Numbered from the stretch's first letter, positions 912 to 20,400 are shown. The stretch: 27,738 nucleotides of DNA from Paramoeba atlantica (GCA_977017575.1 CDRNVI010000202.1:1-27738), one strand, 5' to 3'. The notes: generated from the sequence alone by a model not told the origin. Program-made: numbers and translations.

Positions 912-1403
912 ATGTATTTATTAGTATTATATTTACCATTAATAAGTTTTTAATTATAAGTTTTTTTGGGCGTTTATTAGGAAATAAAGGTAGTTTTATA
1001 ATTGCGAATTTTAATATGTTATTAACAGTGTTGTTATCATATTATATTTTTTATGAAACTGTATTAAAAGGTTCTGTATGTTTTTTAAAAATTATTTTCA
1101 TGATTTAATATAGGTTTATTTAATGTAACATGAGGATTTATTTTCGATCCTGTAACAGGTGTTATGTTAATTGTAGTAAATACAATATCTTTATTAGTTC
1201 ATTTTTATTCAATAGGTTATATGTATAATGATCCTTTTTCTTCTCGATTTGTATCTTATTTATCATTATTTACATGATTTATGTTAATGTTAGTTACAGC
1301 TGATAATATATTACAATTATTTTTAGGTTGAGAAGGTGTTGGTTTAGTATCTTATTTATTAATTAATTTTTGATTTACAATAGCAGATGCAAACAAAGCT
1401 GCC
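912..1403 (+). CDS. nad5: Mitochondrial-type NADH dehydrogenase subunit 5, N-terminal ~165 aa, cut off by the telomere array; two 1-bp frameshifts; TGA read as Trp
   Basis: [13 protein letters not shown] / one T missing in run 947-951 / ...VCFLK / extra A in run 1087-1091 / LFSWFNIG...[36 protein letters not shown]...[56 protein letters not shown] occupies conserved Trp sites (GWEG 1329-1331, NFWF 1371-1373). Confidence 0.95.
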
Positions 1404-2043
1404 TAAACCCTAAACCCTAAACCCTAAACCCTAAACCCTAAACCCTAAACCCTAAACCCTAAACCCTAAACCCTAAACCCTAAACCCTAAACCCTAAACC
1501 CTAAACCCTAAACCCTAAACCCTAAACCCTAAACCCTAAACCCTAAACCCTAAACCCTAAACCCTAAACCCTAAACCCTAAACCCTAAACCCTAAACCCT
1601 AAACCCTAAACCCTAAACCCTAAACCCTAAACCCTAAACCCTAAACCCTAAACCCTAAACCCTAAACCCTAAACCCTAAACCCTAAACCCTAAACCCTAA
1701 ACCCTAAACCCTAAACCCTAAACCCTAAACCCTAAACCCTAAACCCTAAACCCTAAACCCTAAACCCTAAACCCTAAACCCTAAACCCTAAACCCTAAAC
1801 CCTAAACCCTAAACCCTAAACCCTAAACCCTAAACCCTAAACCCTAAACCCTAAACCCTAAACCCTAAACCCTAAACCCTAAACCCTAAACCCTAAACCC
1901 TAAACCCTAAACCCTAAACCCTAAACCCTAAACCCTAAACCCTAAACCCTAAACCCTAAACCCTAAACCCTAAACCCTAAACCCTAAACCCTAAACCCTA
2001 AACCCTAAACCCTAAACCCTAAACCCTAAACCCTAAACCCTAA
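1402..2043 (+). repeat. Telomeric array (CCCTAAA)n, ~92 copies, C-strand on + (left-end orientation)
   Basis: Uninterrupted 7-mer repeat over 642 bp, no variant units seen; the reverse complement is TTTAGGG. Confidence 0.99.
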
Positions 2044-2920: not shown

Positions 2921-3106
2921 AAAGTCCTATCATTATATGTGAATTTCATACATAAGACCTCTTCGTAAACTGCCTATAACTTTTTGTGACATATTCAGAT
3001 TTTAAAAAAAAATATGCCATTAGATAGACAAAAATGAGGCGCATCTTTCTACCAGTCTTGATTTTCCGGATTGTGAAAAAAAGTAGTTCAAAACGAAGTA
3101 ATTAGG

Positions 3107-3119
3107 CCCTAAACCCTAA
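3107..3119 (+). repeat. Two-copy telomere remnant CCCTAAACCCTAA at the exact left edge of duplication copy A
   Basis: ggCCCTAAACCCTAAt at 3105-3120, same orientation as the main array. Confidence 0.6.
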
Positions 3120-3258
3120 TTTCTCTCTTCTCTCTTCTCTCTCTCTTTCTTTCTCTTTTCTTTCTCTTTTCTTTCTCTTTTCTTTCTCTTTTCTTTCTCT
3201 TCCTCTCTCTCTTTCTCTCTTTCTCTCTCTCTTTTCTCTCTTTCTCTTTCTCATTCAA

Positions 3259-5075
3259 ATAAATAGAAAATCACCAAAAAAGAGAAATTCACATATGGAT
3301 ATGAGAGGAGGTTTCTTTTCTCTCTTCTCTTTCTCCCTTCTCTTTCTCTCTTCTCTTTCTCTTCTCTCTTCTCTCTTTCTCTCTTTCTCTCTTTCTCTCT
3401 TTCTTTCTTTCTTTCTTTCTCTTTTCTTTTCTCTCTCTCTCTTCTCTCTTTCTCTTTTTTCTTCTCAATAAAATTTTCTCTCCTCTTCTCCACTTCTCTC
3501 TTCTCTTCTCTCTTCTCTCTTCTCTCTTTCTTAGGAGCAAGGATGTCACGCCCAAAACAATCAACAAATACGAATGAAGCAAGAGAAAAGGTTTTCTCTC
3601 TCCACTTCTCTTTCTCTCTTTTCTTTTCGCTTCTCTCTTTATCTTTCTCTTCTTTTGCTTTCTCTCTTCTCTTTCTCCCTTCTCTTTCTCTCTTCTCTTT
3701 CTCTTTCTCTCTTTCTCTCTTTTCTTTCTCTTTTCTCTCTCTCTCTCTTTTTTCTCTCTCTTTTTTCTCTCTCTTTTTTCTCTCTCTTTTCTCTCTCTCT
3801 CTCTCTTTTCTCTCTCTCTTTTCTCTCTCTCTTCTTCTTTTTCTCTCTCTCTTCTTCTTTTTTTCTCTCTCTCTTTCTTTTCTCTCTCCTCTCTATTCCC
3901 TTTTTCTTTTTTTCTCTTCTCTCTTTCTTTTTCAAATAATAATTTTTCTTTCCTCCTTTTTTTTTCCTTTTTCTTTCCTTCTTCTCTTTCTTCTCTCTCT
4001 CTTTCTTCTCTCTTTCTTTCTTAATCCAGTTTTTTATTTTCAGATTTTTGTGAAAAGATGAGAGAATCTTGGTTCTGTTCAGAACGGCTGGATTTGGGGC
4101 AAGTCCAAGGAAGCAAACTCGATCATGTCAAGTTCAGACAAACAAAAAGTACTTTCTTCCATATTACTAGAATCAAAGTCTCAGTGACTGTCTCGAACAC
4201 CTGACATTTCAAATCTCGAAGCAATCATTACAATTCTCCTCACCAAACTTTTTCCTGATCTTCTCCAGGATCACATTTCCCGACATCCTCCTTCTTTGTT
4301 TTCAAAAGCACTCTTACTTAGTCTCTCTTATCCTTGATCACCTTCAGAGGGACTGTTTCAAGATTCGAAAGTTTTATTTTTTGGTTCACAACGTGCAATT
4401 CAGCCAGCAGAGCTTCCCACCCGACCATCAGAAGAATACAAGAAATTGGCCAAGAATGGAGGTTGTGGCCTTCATGTGGATGCAGAAGATCCAATTTACA
4501 ACTCAGGTTTATTGATGTATTATTCCTGTTTTGTTGAACCAAATGTTGAAGATTGTGATCATGATCATCCATTACCACAAAATGATTTGGTTTGTTTCCA
4601 ACATCAGAATGGTGGAAGGGGGGCACGAATTCAAACTATGCATCCTAACTTTCTATGTCTTGCATTCCACCAATCTCGGAAGTGCCACAGCACAGTTTTT
4701 CAAAAGAATGATGTTTTTCAAGAAGGTATCCATGGTTTCCGGGTGGTGACTTATCCAATCAAAGCAGTCGAAGATCTTGTTGAACATTGTCAAGATGAAG
4801 CCCCATTTCGGTCTGTCCTCCAACAATGGAAGACTGCCCTTCTAAATTCCTCTTCTCCAAAAAAAATTGCAATGTGGCCTTGATCGAATCTTCAACAAAA
4901 CCCTGCAGGAGGTTCTTTACTGATTCAAAAGCTCCTTTCTCAGGGATGCCAAATCAAACTCTCAACCCCCACTCCCTCAAGATGAGACTCCAGAAAAGGA
5001 GTCGAGAAGTCGAGACTTTGGAATAAAATAACCCTTTCCTTCTTTCAACTTCAACTACTTTCAAGGATGTGATAA
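3259..5075 (+). pseudogene. Spliced 2OG-Fe(II) dioxygenase (TET/JBP-like) pseudogene, copy A; lacks 5' exons, retains the catalytic domain
   Basis: Phase-compatible GT-AG introns 3311-3534 and 3591-4043 join ...KSPKKRNSHMDMRG|GARMSRPKQSTNTNEAREK|IFVK.... The frame of 4044-5075 contains 6 TGA and no TAA/TAG until 5073. Motifs: GLHVDAED (H 4473, D 4479), LAFHQSRKCHST (H 4686), FRVVTYP (R 4740). Confidence 0.65.
3591..4043 (+). repeat. Polypyrimidine (CT/CTT) low-complexity tract forming an intron; similar tracts at 3121-3250, 3311-3534 and 16100-16915
   Basis: Nearly pure C/T. Bounded by GT (3591) and CAG (4041-4043). Confidence 0.8.
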
Positions 5076-6749
5076 ATTTTTTTTGGCAACATGTCTTTCT
5101 CTTTCAAATAATTTGACTCAAAGCAAAAAACTACAAAAATAAATTTTCTTCACATTATTGGCAAACTTCAAGGAGAAATAGGGACTCCTGAAAACAAACT
5201 GTTTCATATAACAGTTATGCAATGATTGTGGTGGTGATTAATGTGGCAATCCCAACTTCAAACCCAAAGAGAGACCAAAAAAAAAGACAGCGAGAAAGGT
5301 GTCCTATCAGTGGGTCCCTTCTCAAACAAAGGACTGGAGAAAGAGAGAAAAAGAAAGAAAGGGGTTTAGTTGAATGGAGGGAAAAAAGAGAGGAGGGGTG
5401 AACACAAAGAAGGGGAGGGAGAATAAAAGAAAACAAATATCAAAAACAAACACTAAAACCAATGTGATTCGCAACAACAATGTGACGATGGTGTGGAGGC
5501 AGTGATAAAAGGTTTCAAATTGTTGATTAAATATGTCACCGATAATCTCAGCGAACTGAAGAAAGAAAAAAAAGAAAGGATTTTTTAGTTAAAAGGAGAG
5601 AGGGGAGAAAAGGAAACAAGGAGGAGGGAGGGGGGGGGAATACAAAAAAGGGGAGAATAAAAGAAAACAAGTATGTGAAAAACAAACACAAAACTGATGA
5701 TTCACAACAACAATGCGATGATGGTGGTAGTAGTAATCCATGGCATATTTGTAAAGCACTCTACTGATTTAACAAACAATCTTTCAATATTAATAAATCG
5801 ATGTCCATTCACCTTGTAATCTGACACACAATTACTTTTGCACAACAACATTCCAAGAGCTCTCTGCAACACAGTTGCTTGATCATCACTCTAATGTTGT
5901 TGTCATTTTGATTATCACATTGTGAAGAATCTTTTCTTCTGATACAAACCCTATATGCAAAAGTTTCAGAAGCTACTCTCTTTCCTTTAAAGAAATCACC
6001 ACCACCCGAACCTTCTTCCTTTGCTCCCCTCACCCTTCCCTCTCTTTTCTTCTAAAAAAACCAAAAAAAAAAAAAAAACCTCTTTGTGTGAAGAAGAAAT
6101 CAGCAACAAATACACTCAATATTCCCTCTCTCCTCCTTTGTTGGTGTTGGTTATTGAGTTGTTCTCATTGTTGTCTCACGTTTTATCGCGTCCTCTTTTT
6201 TTGTTGGAAAGAGAGAAAAAGAAAGAATTCCCAATTAAATAATCTTTTTTCTCTAGGCCAAATACACAAGTTTGCAAATCTCCGAAGGATTAGTGGCAAA
6301 TAAAAATTATCTCAATAAATTAATACCAAAAATAATTTTCTCATTACCAAGAATTTTCTTGATTTGCTACCAAACCCAAAGTACTGAAATTATTCAACAG
6401 AAAACACCCAATCTTTTGGTCGATTGAATGACTAAACTTTTTTCAGGAAACTGAAAAGGGAAAGAAAAGAAAAAAAAAAGGATTAATAATGTGTGTTACT
6501 ATGGAGGAGGGAAATACAAAGAAGGAAGAGAATAAAAGAAAACAAACAAAAAAAAGAAAACAAACACAAAACCCACCATAATTCACAATAACAATGATAA
6601 TTGGTAAAGGTGAAAAAATTATCACTTCAAACCTTATCAATTAAAACCCCAACAAACACACACACAGGCGAGAGAGAGAGAACTCTGGAGAAAGAGAAAA
6701 GAGAAAAAATTAGTGTTAAAAAAGGAAGGAAGGGGAGGAGGGAAAGGGG

Positions 6750-15741: not shown

Positions 15742-16164
15742 ATGAGAGTTTTTTCAAACTCTTCTGACGTGATTTTCCAAAAAAAGAAACGTGAAAATCA
15801 CGTGAATTCTGTTTCTCTCTTTTTTCATTTTATCTTTCCAAGATCCAGAGACAAACTCGCAAGACTGACAGAAACTGAAAAACAAGAAAGGAAGGAAAGG
15901 CAATGCGTGTACCAAAAGCGTTGGTACAACAAAAAAAAAAACCAACCTCTCCCTTCTTTACCTCCCCAGAAGTCCTCAAGGTTACAACAACAACCCTCAT
16001 CATCTCAGGTTCTCTCTCTCTTGGCTTCTTTGTCTCATTACTTTTCTTTCAAACAGGCAATAAATAATGAGGAAAGTCACGACAAATTTGTTTGTTTTTT
16101 TTTTCTCTCTCTTCTCTCTTCTCTCTCTCTTTCTTTCTCTTTTCTTTCTCTTTTCTTTCTCTTC

Positions 16165-16196
<32 letters not shown>

Positions 16197-17422
16197 TCTC
16201 TCTTTCTCTTTCTCATTCAAATAAATAAAAAATCACCAAAAAAGAGAAATTCACATATGGATATGAGAGAAGATTTCTTTTCTCTCTTCTCTTTCTCCCT
16301 TCTCTCTTCTCTTTCTCCCTTCTCTTTCTCTCTTCTCTTTCTCTTCTCTCTTCTCTCTTTCTCTTTTTCCTTTTTAATAAAATTTTCTCTCCTCTTCTCC
16401 ACTTTTCTCTTCTCTTCTCTCTTCTCTCTCTCTCTCTTTCTTAGGAACAAGGATGTCACACCCAAAACAATCAACAAATATGAATGAAGTAAGAGAAAAG
16501 GTTTTCTCTCTCCACTTCTCTCTCTCTCTCTCTCTCTTTTCTTTTCGCTTCTCTCTTTCTCTTTTTCTTCTTTTGCTTTCTCTTTTCTTTTTCACTTTTT
16601 ATCAAATCAGCTTTTTGAAGAAGAATTTCCTGTGGAATCCAAAAAAAATTTTACTCTTTTTTTGGTTCTGGGACTCAAATTAATGGTTTTCTCTCTTTTC
16701 TTTCTCTTTTCTCTCTCTCTTTTCTCTCTCTCTTTTCTCTCTCTCTTCTTCTTTTTCTCTTTCTCTCTCTTTCTTTTCTCTCTCCTCTCTATTCTCTTTT
16801 TCTCTTTTTCTTTTCTCTCTTTCTTTTTCAAATAATAATTTTTCTTTCCTCCTTTTTCTTTCCTTTTTCTTTCCTTCTTCTCTTTCTTCTCTCTCTCTTT
16901 CTTCTCTCTTTCTTTCTTAATCCAGTTTTTTATTTTTGAATTTTTGTGAAAAAATGAGAAAATCTTGGTTCTGTTCAGAACAGTTGGATTTGGGGCAGGT
17001 CCAGGGAAGCAAACTTGATTATGTCAAGTTCAGACAAACAAAAAGTGCTTTCTTCCATATTACCAGAATCAAAGTTTCAGTGACTGTCTCGAACACCTGA
17101 CATTTCAAATTTCGAAGCAATCATTACAATTCGCCTTACCAAACTTTTTCCTGATCTTCTCCAGGATCACATTTCCTGACATTCTCCTTCTTTGTTTTCA
17201 AAAGCACTCTTACTTAGTCTCTCTTATCCTTGATCACCTTCAGAGGGACCGTTTCAAGATTCAAAAGTTTTATTTTTTGGTTCACAACATGCAATTCAGC
17301 CAGCAGAGCTTCCCACCTGACCATCAGAAGAATACAAGAAATTGGCTAAGAATGGAGGTTGTGGCTTTCATGTGGATGTAGAAGATCCAATTTACAACTT
17401 AGATTTATTGATGTATTATTCC
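15742..17422 (+). pseudogene. Same dioxygenase gene, copy B; carries the 5' exons but is truncated 15 codons after the HxD Asp
   Basis: ATG 15742 ...RDKLARLTETEKQERKERQCVYQKRWYNKKKNQ...SSSQ, a 48-nt GT-AG intron 16009-16056, exon AINNEESHDKF, then exons matching copy A. HVD is retained, there are extra TGA at 17177 and 17318, and some splice sites are lost by G>A. Homology stops at tattcc 17422. Confidence 0.6.
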
Positions 17423-20400
17423 AGAAAGAGGAAGAAGGAAAGTGAGAGAAGAGAGAAGGGGTGAGGCAAGAGGAAAAGGGAGAAAAAAAAAGAAGGGAAG
17501 AGAAGAAAGAAAAGAAGAGGAAAGAGAAAGATGAAGAAAAAATAGAGAAAATGTCAGTCAGGGAAAAAAGGGAGTTGGATCATTCAGTGGGAATGGATGT
17601 GTAAGAATGGCTCTAAAATGAATGAACAAAACAAGAACTGATAAAATCATAACAGGGAGGAAAGAAATAAAAGTTAAATCTTTAAAGAAAGAGAGAAAAA
17701 GAAGTTGAAGAAAGAGGAGGGTGGTCAGGATTTCTTTGGGTTCTTCTTTTGTAAACAAAAATGATAAGGGAATAAGTTGGTGGTTTGTTGTTGTTTGTTG
17801 TGATTTTTTGAAGTGAAAACTTTGTTGTTGTAGTTCATGTGGTTCAACATAAATAAAAGAAGGAGGAGAAGGACCTTCTCCTCCTTTTTTTTAAAGGATT
17901 TTGTTTCTTCTTTCTCTTTTGTGATGATGAAGATGAAGAGATGGCTGAAAAACATGATGATAATCATGAGCATAGCAGTGATGGTGGTGGCCCTCCCAGA
18001 TTTGAATCTCCTAAATTCAGAAATAAACTTCCAGTGGTGAGATAACAACACTGACAACCAAAATTGTGAGTAAAACGAAAAGAAAAAAAAGTCTCTAATT
18101 TCTTCTACATTCAAGAAGAGAGTCCCTTCTTCTTCTTCTGCCACCGCAACACTAACACCAACCAAACTTTATTTCTTTTTTATTCAACGAAACCCCTAAA
18201 CCTTTCGAAAAATAATAAAAAAAAATATTTCAACACAAAAAGAGATTCCGAAGTGTTCATGTTTCAAACACTTGGTGTTTGCAGTTCAACAGACTACCCA
18301 CACACATAGTTTTACTGCTGCTTTTTGATTTCATTGAATTGCTCAAAGAAAAAAGATATGCAAAGCAAATCCAAATATTACTTTAACCTCAAAGAGTTGA
18401 TTTTCTTTTTGGTTTTTAGTTTTTCAACGCATCGAGGTTTCGCCATGTTTTGTCGACAAATCCTCACAATATTCCTCTCTTGGCAATGACAAAAGACTTT
18501 GAATTGTTGATTAAATCATGAATAATCTCAGTGAACTGGAGAAAGAGAAAAGAAAAAAGAGAAAAGAGAAAAGGTTAGTATTAAAAGGAAGGAGGGAAAG
18601 GGGAGGGAAAGGAAGAAGGGAAAGGGGAGGGAAAGGGGAGGAAAGGGGAGGGAAAGAGGAGGAATTAGAGGAGGAATTAGGGGAAGAGAAAAGAAAACAA
18701 AACTCTGAAAACAAACTGTTTCATATAACAGTTATGCAATGATTGTGGTGGTGATTAATGTGGTAATTCCAATGAGAGACCAAAAAAAAAAAACAATGAA
18801 AAAGGTGTCCTATCAGTGGGTTCCTTCTCAAATGGAGAACTGAAGAAAGAGAGAAAAAGAAAGAAAGGGGTTTAGTTGAATGGAGGGAGAAAAAGGAGGA
18901 GGAGTAAACACAAAGAAGGAGAGGGAGAATAAAAGAAAACAAATATCAAAAACAAATACTAAAACCAATGTGATTCGCAACAACAATGTGATGATGGTGT
19001 GGAGGCAGTGATAAAAGGTTTCAAATTGTTGATTAAATATGTCACTGATAATCTCAGTGAACTGGAGAAAGAGAAAAAAGAAAGGATTTTTTAGTTAAAA
19101 GGAGAGAGGGGAGAAAAGGAAACAAGGAGGAGGGAGGGGGGGGGAACACAAAGAAGGGGAGGGAGAATAAAAGAAAACAAATATGTGAAAAACAAACACA
19201 AAACTGATGATTCACAACAACAATATGATGATGGTGGCAGTAGTAATCTATAGCATATTTGTAAAGCACTCTACTGATTTAACAAACAATCTCCTCTCGA
19301 TATTGATAAATTGATGTCCATTCACCTTGCAATCTGACACACAATCACTTTTGCGCAACAACATTCCAAGAGCTCTCTGCAACACAGTTGCTTGATTGTT
19401 ACTCTAATGTTATTGTCATTTCAGTTATCACATCGCAAAGAATCTTTTCTTCCAATACAAACCCTATATGCAAAAGTTTCAGAAGCTACTCTCTTTCTTT
19501 TAAAGAAATCACCACCACCTGAACCTTCTTTCTTTGCTCCCCTCACCCTAAACCCTCTCTTTTCTTCTAAAAAGATCAAAAAAAAAAAAAAAACCTCTTT
19601 GTGTGAAGAAGAAATCAACAACAAACACACTCAATATTCCCTCTCTCCTCCTTTGTTGGTGTTGGTTATTGAGTTGTTCTTATTGTTGTCACACGTTTTA
19701 TCGTGTCTTCTTTTTTTGTTGGAAAAAAAAAAAAAAAAAGAATTTTCAATTAAATAATCTTTTTCCTCTAGACCAAATACACAAGTTTGCAAATCTCCGA
19801 AGAATTAGTGGCAAATAAAAATTATCTCAATAAACATTAATACCAAAAATAATTTTCTCATTACCAAGAATTTTCTTGATTTGCTATTAGACCCAAAGTA
19901 CTGAAATTATTCAACAGAAAACATCCAATCTTTTGGTCGATTGAATGACTGAACTTTTTTCAAGAAACTGAAAAGGGAAAGAAAAGAAAAAAGAAAAGAT
20001 TAGTAATGTGTGTTACTATGGAGGAGGGAAATACAAAGAAGGAAGAGAATAAAAGAAAACAAACAAAAAAAAGAAAACAAATACAAAATCTACCATGATT
20101 TACAACAACAACGATAATTAGTAAAGGTGAAAAAATTATCGCTTCAAACCTTATCAATTAAAACCCCAACAAACACATACACAGGCGAGAGAGAGAGAAC
20201 TCTGGAGAAAGAGAAAAGAAAAAAGATTAGTGTTAAAAGGAAGGAAGGGGAGGAAGGAAAGGGGAGGGATAAAATGAATGTAGCAATCTTTATAATACAT
20301 GCACACATCATTGATATTTGACAAACAACCTCTCAATAATTGATAAGAATTTAGGGTGTCCATTCACCTTGCAATCCAACACACAAACACTTTCGTGCAC

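Follow-up and report, generated by a model that had tools for sequence, protein, structure and literature searches.

Positions 3,259 to 5,075 of a 27.7-kb contig of the amoeba Paramoeba atlantica (C202, analyzed here in its entirety and called the window; the assembly is 45.7 Mb) probably contain a non-functional relic of a Fe(II)/2-oxoglutarate (2OG) dioxygenase gene with a TET/JBP-like fold, one that belongs to an unannotated family of marine-protist proteins and that has been copied subtelomerically and is decaying. A first-pass annotation had read this stretch as a cryptic, functional TET/JBP-like gene carried in a subtelomeric repeat, and had ranked it as the window's best candidate for an undescribed system. 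What the stretch holds instead is the remains of a dead gene, embedded in a duplicated subtelomeric block, and none of the copies seen could yield an enzyme. The interest that remains lies in the unannotated TET-like family to which the relic points.

The former coding sequence is nonetheless real. The open piece at 4338-4880 (181 codons), which is the longest open reading frame (ORF) of the window once low-complexity sequence is excluded, has non-self homologues at E values of 5e-17 to 1e-12, far above chance, and a profile of the family matches 4197-4835 at E 9e-67. The catalytic residues named by the first-pass annotation, CAT GTG GAT (H-V-D) at 4473-4481, CAC (His) at 4686-4688 and CGG (Arg) at 4740-4742, 18 codons past the His, are confirmed and prove to be the invariant residues of the family. 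The terminal exon of about 344 codons in which they had been placed survives in part: the frame 4044-5075 does comprise 344 codons, interrupted by five internal stops that are all TGA, but as a single frame it is correct just for about 4200-4858, is wrong before ~4200 and after 4858, and is not spliceable. The coding remains divide as follows.

4078..4200, plus strand: first surviving coding segment, in phase with 4021, reading VGFGAGPGKQTR...PYY-stop-NQSLSD
4197..4221, plus strand: frame change, where homology leaves the 4021 phase and continues in the 4044 phase; common to all genome copies
4200..4858, plus strand: main segment, read in the 4044 phase and encoding the core of the double-stranded beta-helix; holds HVD, the distal His and the Arg
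4859..4866, plus strand: run of eight A, one A more than the A7 of the copies on C206, C142 and C159, leaving the tail out of frame
4867..5031, plus strand: putative tail at the C-terminus, read in the 4021 phase and containing the stops TGA (4921-4923) and TAA (5029-5031)

Family homology in the window begins at about 4078. The first segment is defined by tblastn with residues 102-170 of P0005, which traces the upstream frame across 4078-4221, and family profile positions 3-61 match 4081-4290; within it, the TAG at 4168-4170 is CGG, TGG or CAG in other copies. At the frame change the two tblastn pieces share P0005 residues 166-170, and the profile likewise gives two matches in differing frames. 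Profile search recovers the same change near 4200 in a second copy in the window (copy B) and in the copy on C159, and since the frameshift is found in every copy, amplification must have started from a fragment already broken. Farther downstream, the A7 frame of the sister copies (SSPKKLQCGLDRIFNK...) matches the relative P0002 (SSPENLRYGRDQIL...). Weak homology suggests that the tail at 4867-5031 may also have been coding; 113 nt of it (4902-5014) are deleted in C206, C142 and C159. The first ~100 domain residues of the family (HPxTGDP...VVW...ASGxY) have no match in the window or the genome when 100-112 N-terminal residues serve as queries in tblastn and genome searches. In place of the uninterrupted full-domain frame under purifying selection expected of a functional gene, the locus has a shared frameshift, stops and no N-terminus.

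The remaining copies tell the same story of decay. No intact paralogue came up when the whole assembly was searched at the DNA, protein and profile levels. Eight copies are present, two in the window and one each on C206, C142, C159, C143, C144 and C164, together with a 3' scrap on C163; all eight are broken by stops or truncation, and an intact copy, for which the first-pass annotation had proposed to search, is not among them. The second copy in the window is the following.

16940..17422, plus strand: copy B, the relic's counterpart in the second tandem unit; identity 95%, ends 14 codons past HVD, contains three TGA

Substitutions among the copies fall at codon positions 1, 2 and 3 in the proportions 35/30/22, and 56 nonsynonymous changes stand against 11 synonymous ones, with four new stops. 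Given this spread and this ratio, the copies evolve without coding constraint, and the proposal of a functional gene falls with it. Across 4021-5200 and the copies L002-L008, transitions (96) outnumber transversions (17), and by majority rule 75 changes run from GC to AT and 21 from AT to GC. Just one quarter of the changes lie in a CpG context, and observed/expected CpG is 0.19-0.47. The subtelomeric repeats thus show a strong bias resembling deamination or repeat-induced point mutation (RIP).

The family itself was delineated with HMMER, by searching 1.84 billion representative proteins exhaustively with a sister-copy piece (L002:1799-2365); 43 proteins reached E<=1e-3, and 13 of them also E<=1e-10. 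Besides near-identical ORFs of the same repeat, these homologues are 25-40% identical and 180-1060 aa long, and derive from ENA and Logan metagenomes, MMETSP transcriptomes and Prymnesium parvum (KAL1506953.1, a 'hypothetical protein'). They form an unannotated family of marine protists, comprising this amoeba, a close relative, the haptophyte Prymnesium and the sources of the MMETSP transcriptomes. Four residues are constant in every member scored, namely H (37/37) and D (37/37) of the first motif, the distal H (42/42) and a basic R/K (41/41), and the window copy retains them all. The R/K lies about 18-27 residues past the distal His and is followed at +4 by Tyr in 39 of 41 members, giving a strand of the form [RK]-x-V-x-Y. 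Further signatures are S-x-LHVDxxD, DLxVF...GGRGxRIxTM and LHGxVFP, and intact members have a catalytic module of roughly 400 residues followed by a helical tail. Current domain libraries have overlooked these proteins. Among the homologues no Pfam domain covers the family core, and 1 of the 48 alignment members matches the generic 2OG-FeII_Oxy_3 (PF13640) at E 4.9e-4, the window piece itself being without a match. PHROGs yielded no match, PDB sequences none by phmmer or by the family profile, and a literature search no published description of this dioxygenase family.

What kind of dioxygenase the family represents is best approached through its predicted structure. An AlphaFold2 model of the intact member P0012 (residues 155-610, from a 44-sequence alignment) has a predicted local distance difference test score (pLDDT) of 89.6 and a predicted template modelling score (pTM) of 0.91, with helices on either side of a beta-rich core and a helical bundle at the C-terminus; the window piece 4338-4880, modeled by the same program, reaches a pLDDT of 84.4. 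The double-stranded beta-helix, or jelly-roll, of the Fe(II)/2OG dioxygenase superfamily is present in the prediction, and the HxD...H triad with a basic residue after the distal His is found in the family and in the window alike. The fold that the first-pass annotation anticipated is therefore predicted, and its best matches are not prolyl hydroxylases. In a Foldseek search of the PDB, the top matches of the P0012 model are nucleic-acid 2OG oxygenases alone: FTO (E 1.5e-5), then CcTet, CMD1, TET2, ALKBH1 and NgTet1. When 48,161 chains are ranked by structure, human TET2, Naegleria NgTet1 and Chlamydomonas CMD1 occupy places 1-3 and Coprinopsis CcTet place 5, and 215-249 residues are aligned with TET/JBP structures as against 179-189 with AlkB-family structures. 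The nearest ESM Atlas entry is a phage Tet_JBP (PF12851) cluster (TM 0.47/0.67, 256 residues aligned), a fungal Tet-like PF20515 cluster aligns across 288 residues, and the best named match in BFVD is a phage protein called 'JBP1/TET oxygenase domain'; the ESM Atlas feature search gave scores of 0.83 or below. Modeled alone, the window piece finds just generic cupin and double-stranded beta-helix matches. The predicted fold is accordingly nearest to the TET/JBP DNA-base oxidases, with a margin over AlkB of 1-2 Z. Shared with those enzymes are the beta-helix and its N-terminal extension, the HxD...H triad, the late-strand basic residue that binds 2OG and the aromatic residue after it, and the motif HxDxxD-x5-G, which also occurs in this genome's own Tet_JBP proteins.

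Several results weigh against this assignment. Neither PF12851 nor PF20515 matches any of the five window pieces, the three sister-copy pieces or the 48 members (E<=10), and Pfam yielded no Tet_JBP domain in 10+10 homologues either, so the profile check proposed by the first-pass annotation came back empty. The family profile finds no PDB chain and thus no TET. Against a canonical Tet_JBP alignment of 25 sequences, begun from this genome's own PF12851 genes, hhalign gives a probability of 2% and aligns the HxDxxD-x5-G motif alone; against single canonical Tet_JBP proteins it aligns the HxD motif alone, without significance. AlkB-family structures score just 1-2 Z lower, near the tie range of the tool, and the first place in Foldseek belongs to FTO. 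The fold evidence moreover comes from a predicted model of a homologue that is ~28% identical to the window piece. In sequence the family also differs from TET/JBP proteins in the spacing of its [RK]-x-V-x-Y strand (RLSCVFY and RLSLVAY in this genome's canonical Tet_JBP), in the GGRG-x-RI-x-TM and LHG-x-VFP motifs that are particular to it, and in its long helical C-terminal bundle (model residues about 385-455); the window copy differs further in being a truncated pseudogene. The TET/JBP assignment of the first-pass annotation is consequently kept in part, as a likeness of fold and motif logic under which the family is filed, and its extension to membership by sequence is not borne out.

Because the predicted fold is nearest to TET/JBP, the ancestral enzyme most likely oxidized a nucleic-acid base, for example 5-methylcytosine (5mC) or thymine. 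The most serious alternative is that the ancestral family was a 2OG dioxygenase not acting on DNA bases, either an AlkB-like enzyme of repair or RNA demethylation or a hydroxylase of chromatin proteins, in which case the likeness to TET/JBP would amount to a common double-stranded beta-helix with an N-terminal extension. This is a minority view, though one to be taken seriously. The lead of FTO in Foldseek, the generic 2OG-FeII_Oxy_3 domain as the sole Pfam match of any member, the lack of significance in hhalign and the placement of Tyr at +4 from the Arg rather than at +6 as in the RxSxVxY strand of TET all speak for it. All four solved TET/JBP representatives nevertheless stand in the top five of 48,161 chains, with the longer alignments; the best Atlas and BFVD matches are Tet_JBP proteins; and the canonical Tet_JBP proteins of this genome align with the family at HxDxxD-x5-G and nowhere else. 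The AlkB family (PF13532), with its shorter aligned cores, gives no hidden Markov model match, and its RxNxTxR motif is absent from the family.

Gene architecture in a relative bears on the same question. A closer relative, on ENA contig ctg2986l (L028, 8001-10657), carries the same gene in intact-looking form, 53-66% identical, with a T/C-rich GT-AG intron of 228 nt. The ORF of its second exon reads on, across a linker rich in Asn and Asp, into a DOT1-like S-adenosylmethionine methyltransferase region (Pfam DOT1 E 0.005, below threshold), and from this sequence the gene is possibly a dioxygenase-methyltransferase fusion. The window contains neither this intron nor the DOT1-like region, and a search with the L028 sequence found no DOT1-like domain in this genome. 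Another family member carries a weak PHD finger. Junction with a DOT1-like histone methyltransferase and a weak PHD finger would suit a chromatin protein substrate as well as DNA; these hints fit a chromatin- or DNA-directed enzyme and do not decide between the two. Base oxidation is still the preferred reading of the ancestral function.

How the relic came to lie at chromosome ends is recorded in its surroundings, of which the following features are the most telling.

1402..2043, plus strand: telomere array (CCCTAAA)x92, 100% matches in Tandem Repeats Finder; marks the block as subtelomeric
3593..4022, strand not assigned: CT-rich microsatellite abutting the 5' side of the relic; family homology does not pass through it

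After the telomere array come two tandem units of a 13-15 kb block, and telomere arrays begin or end all other copy-bearing contigs (C206, C142, C143, C144, C164 and C159), at about 1-24 kb from the copy; the subtelomeric location given by the first-pass annotation is thereby upheld. Comparison with C206, C142 and C159 indicates an ancestral unit in which the relic was followed by a 1.25-kb segment. The tandem units of the window have undergone reciprocal deletions with breakpoints at 5188/5189 and 17422/17423. The first copy (copy A) has lost the 1.25-kb segment, equivalent to 17423-18675, by which the relic is followed in C206, C142 and C159, and copy B, compared with C206 and C142, is without the 3' half of the relic. 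Long CT-rich microsatellites at 3100-4022 and 16000-16930 flank short unique islands, resemble the T/C-rich intron of the relative L028 and, at about 3107, include an interstitial CCCTAAACCCTAA. Outside the telomere array, positions 1-1400 are mitochondrial-type DNA with a GC content of about 20%, containing a C-terminal atp6 ORF (279-554) and nad4L (686-892; PF00420 homologues), the latter with its best named match in Paramoeba aparasomata at 73% identity; this stretch is either a mitochondrial insertion capping the chromosome tip or an assembly chimera.

The block has most likely spread by segmental exchange between chromosome ends and not by transposition, since the window contains no transposase-like ORF and no long inverted repeats. 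A likely course of events would begin with a 5'-truncated, already frameshifted gene fragment becoming part of the 13-15 kb subtelomeric block. The block would then have been duplicated in tandem and have reached at least seven chromosome ends, after which its copies would have drifted neutrally, mainly through GC-to-AT transitions of the kind that turn CGA into TGA stops, with at least one copy type probably transcribed in a related strain. Comparable multi-kb blocks, present at many ends as tandem units, decaying neutrally and in part transcribed, are the Y' elements of yeast and the subtelomeric blocks of humans; the present one differs in its amoeba host with TTTAGGG telomeres and in the TET-like dioxygenase relic embedded in it.

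It is improbable that the relic was instead the cargo of a transposon or retro-element, whether as the anti-silencing gene of a DNA transposon or as a processed retrocopy that landed in a subtelomere. Truncation at the 5' end and the absence of the GT-AG intron that splits the same codon region in L028 are typical of retrocopies, and the L028 gene adjoins a Ty3-type retroelement. Set against this, the 27.7-kb window is without a transposase, a reverse transcriptase, any ORF >200 aa and any inverted repeats >=200 nt, as judged from a listing of ORFs and repeats and with no profile search of the whole block; the copies all lie at chromosome ends in one large shared block, which fits segmental spread; the intact member P0044 sits among ordinary host genes; the 3' end of the relic has no poly-A tail; and intron gain in the relative would explain the absence of the intron equally well. 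The fungal TET/JBP genes borne by Kyakuja-Dileera-Zisupton (KDZ) transposons resemble the present case in placing a dioxygenase-type gene in repeated DNA, and differ from it in that the relic belongs to another protein family, is accompanied by no transposase, has a segmental block at subtelomeres as its repeat and is dead in every copy. Nothing at the locus shows transposon carriage or a working counter-silencing system, the latter a role that the first-pass annotation had thought possible, and segmental exchange remains the better account.

That the stretch might be a live cryptic gene, whose product would depend on mini-exons spliced in from upstream, on TGA serving as a sense codon or on programmed frameshifting, is already largely refuted and can be given almost no credence: the all-TGA stops of the 4044 frame, the GT/AG-bounded islands in the CT-rich DNA upstream, an MMETSP transcript spanning a sister copy and metagenome ORFs (P0001, P0052) open across 280 codons would favor it, but the N-terminal third of the domain is missing genome-wide and coding constraint is lacking. 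The spliced model was rejected, the AG 'acceptor' at 4042-4043 being unique to the window copy among those aligned (CGG in C206, C142 and C159, TGA in copy B) and the upstream islands being without homology. Recoding of TGA, which the first-pass annotation had accommodated by translating it as X, was rejected as well. The TGA at 4335-4337 is CGA in C142 and C159, the CGA at 4281 is TGA in C206 and copy B, and stops in other copies include TAA and TAG; this alternation points to ordinary C-to-T nonsense mutations and not to a variant code. Two of the five TGA in the 4044 frame (4059 and 4185) moreover fall where the homologous frame is another, and the long canonical ORFs of this genome (893-1048 aa) read with the standard code. 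The MMETSP ORF P0048 (131 aa), a copy of the C206 type, carries fewer mutations than do any of the assembled copies, and in a related strain at least one type of copy is therefore transcribed. The metagenome ORFs P0001 and P0052 (280 aa) are open owing to a +1 T near 4308 that compensates the upstream shift, and carry 37 residues out of the family frame between the two compensating shifts. A decayed relic is the reading that stands.

The same genome also retains enzymes of the canonical kind. Four intact canonical Tet_JBP (PF12851) ORFs of 893-1048 codons are present, matching at the places below and not at the relic locus, and they belong to a different family from the relic.

C3:218187-218660: PF12851 match
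C30:803409-803882: PF12851 match
C39:574702-575160: PF12851 match
C40:275206-275664: PF12851 match

A six-frame search of the genome found no cytosine-5 DNA methyltransferase (PF00145).

For the locus itself the result is deflationary, a dead fragment riding in a subtelomeric duplication block. Its eight copies still provide a dated neutral series at chromosome ends, in which the bias toward GC-to-AT transitions and the dynamics of subtelomere exchange can be gauged. More broadly, the relic has led to a well-conserved, confidently modeled and unannotated TET-like family. Tentatively, the intact relatives, from amoebae, haptophytes and other marine protists, may form a clade not described before, whose members would be TET/JBP-like dioxygenases of nucleic-acid bases, would go unseen by Pfam and would sometimes be joined to chromatin modules, with the relics as the trace of a lost enzyme. 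The intact members P0012 and P0044 (638-652 aa), P0011 (342 aa) and Prymnesium KAL1506953.1 are candidates for DNA- or RNA-base oxidation. If such a clade exists, base modifications besides 5mC, such as 5-hydroxymethyluracil (5hmU), could be at play in this amoeba, because canonical Tet_JBP genes are kept in a genome in which no C5 DNA methyltransferase was found.
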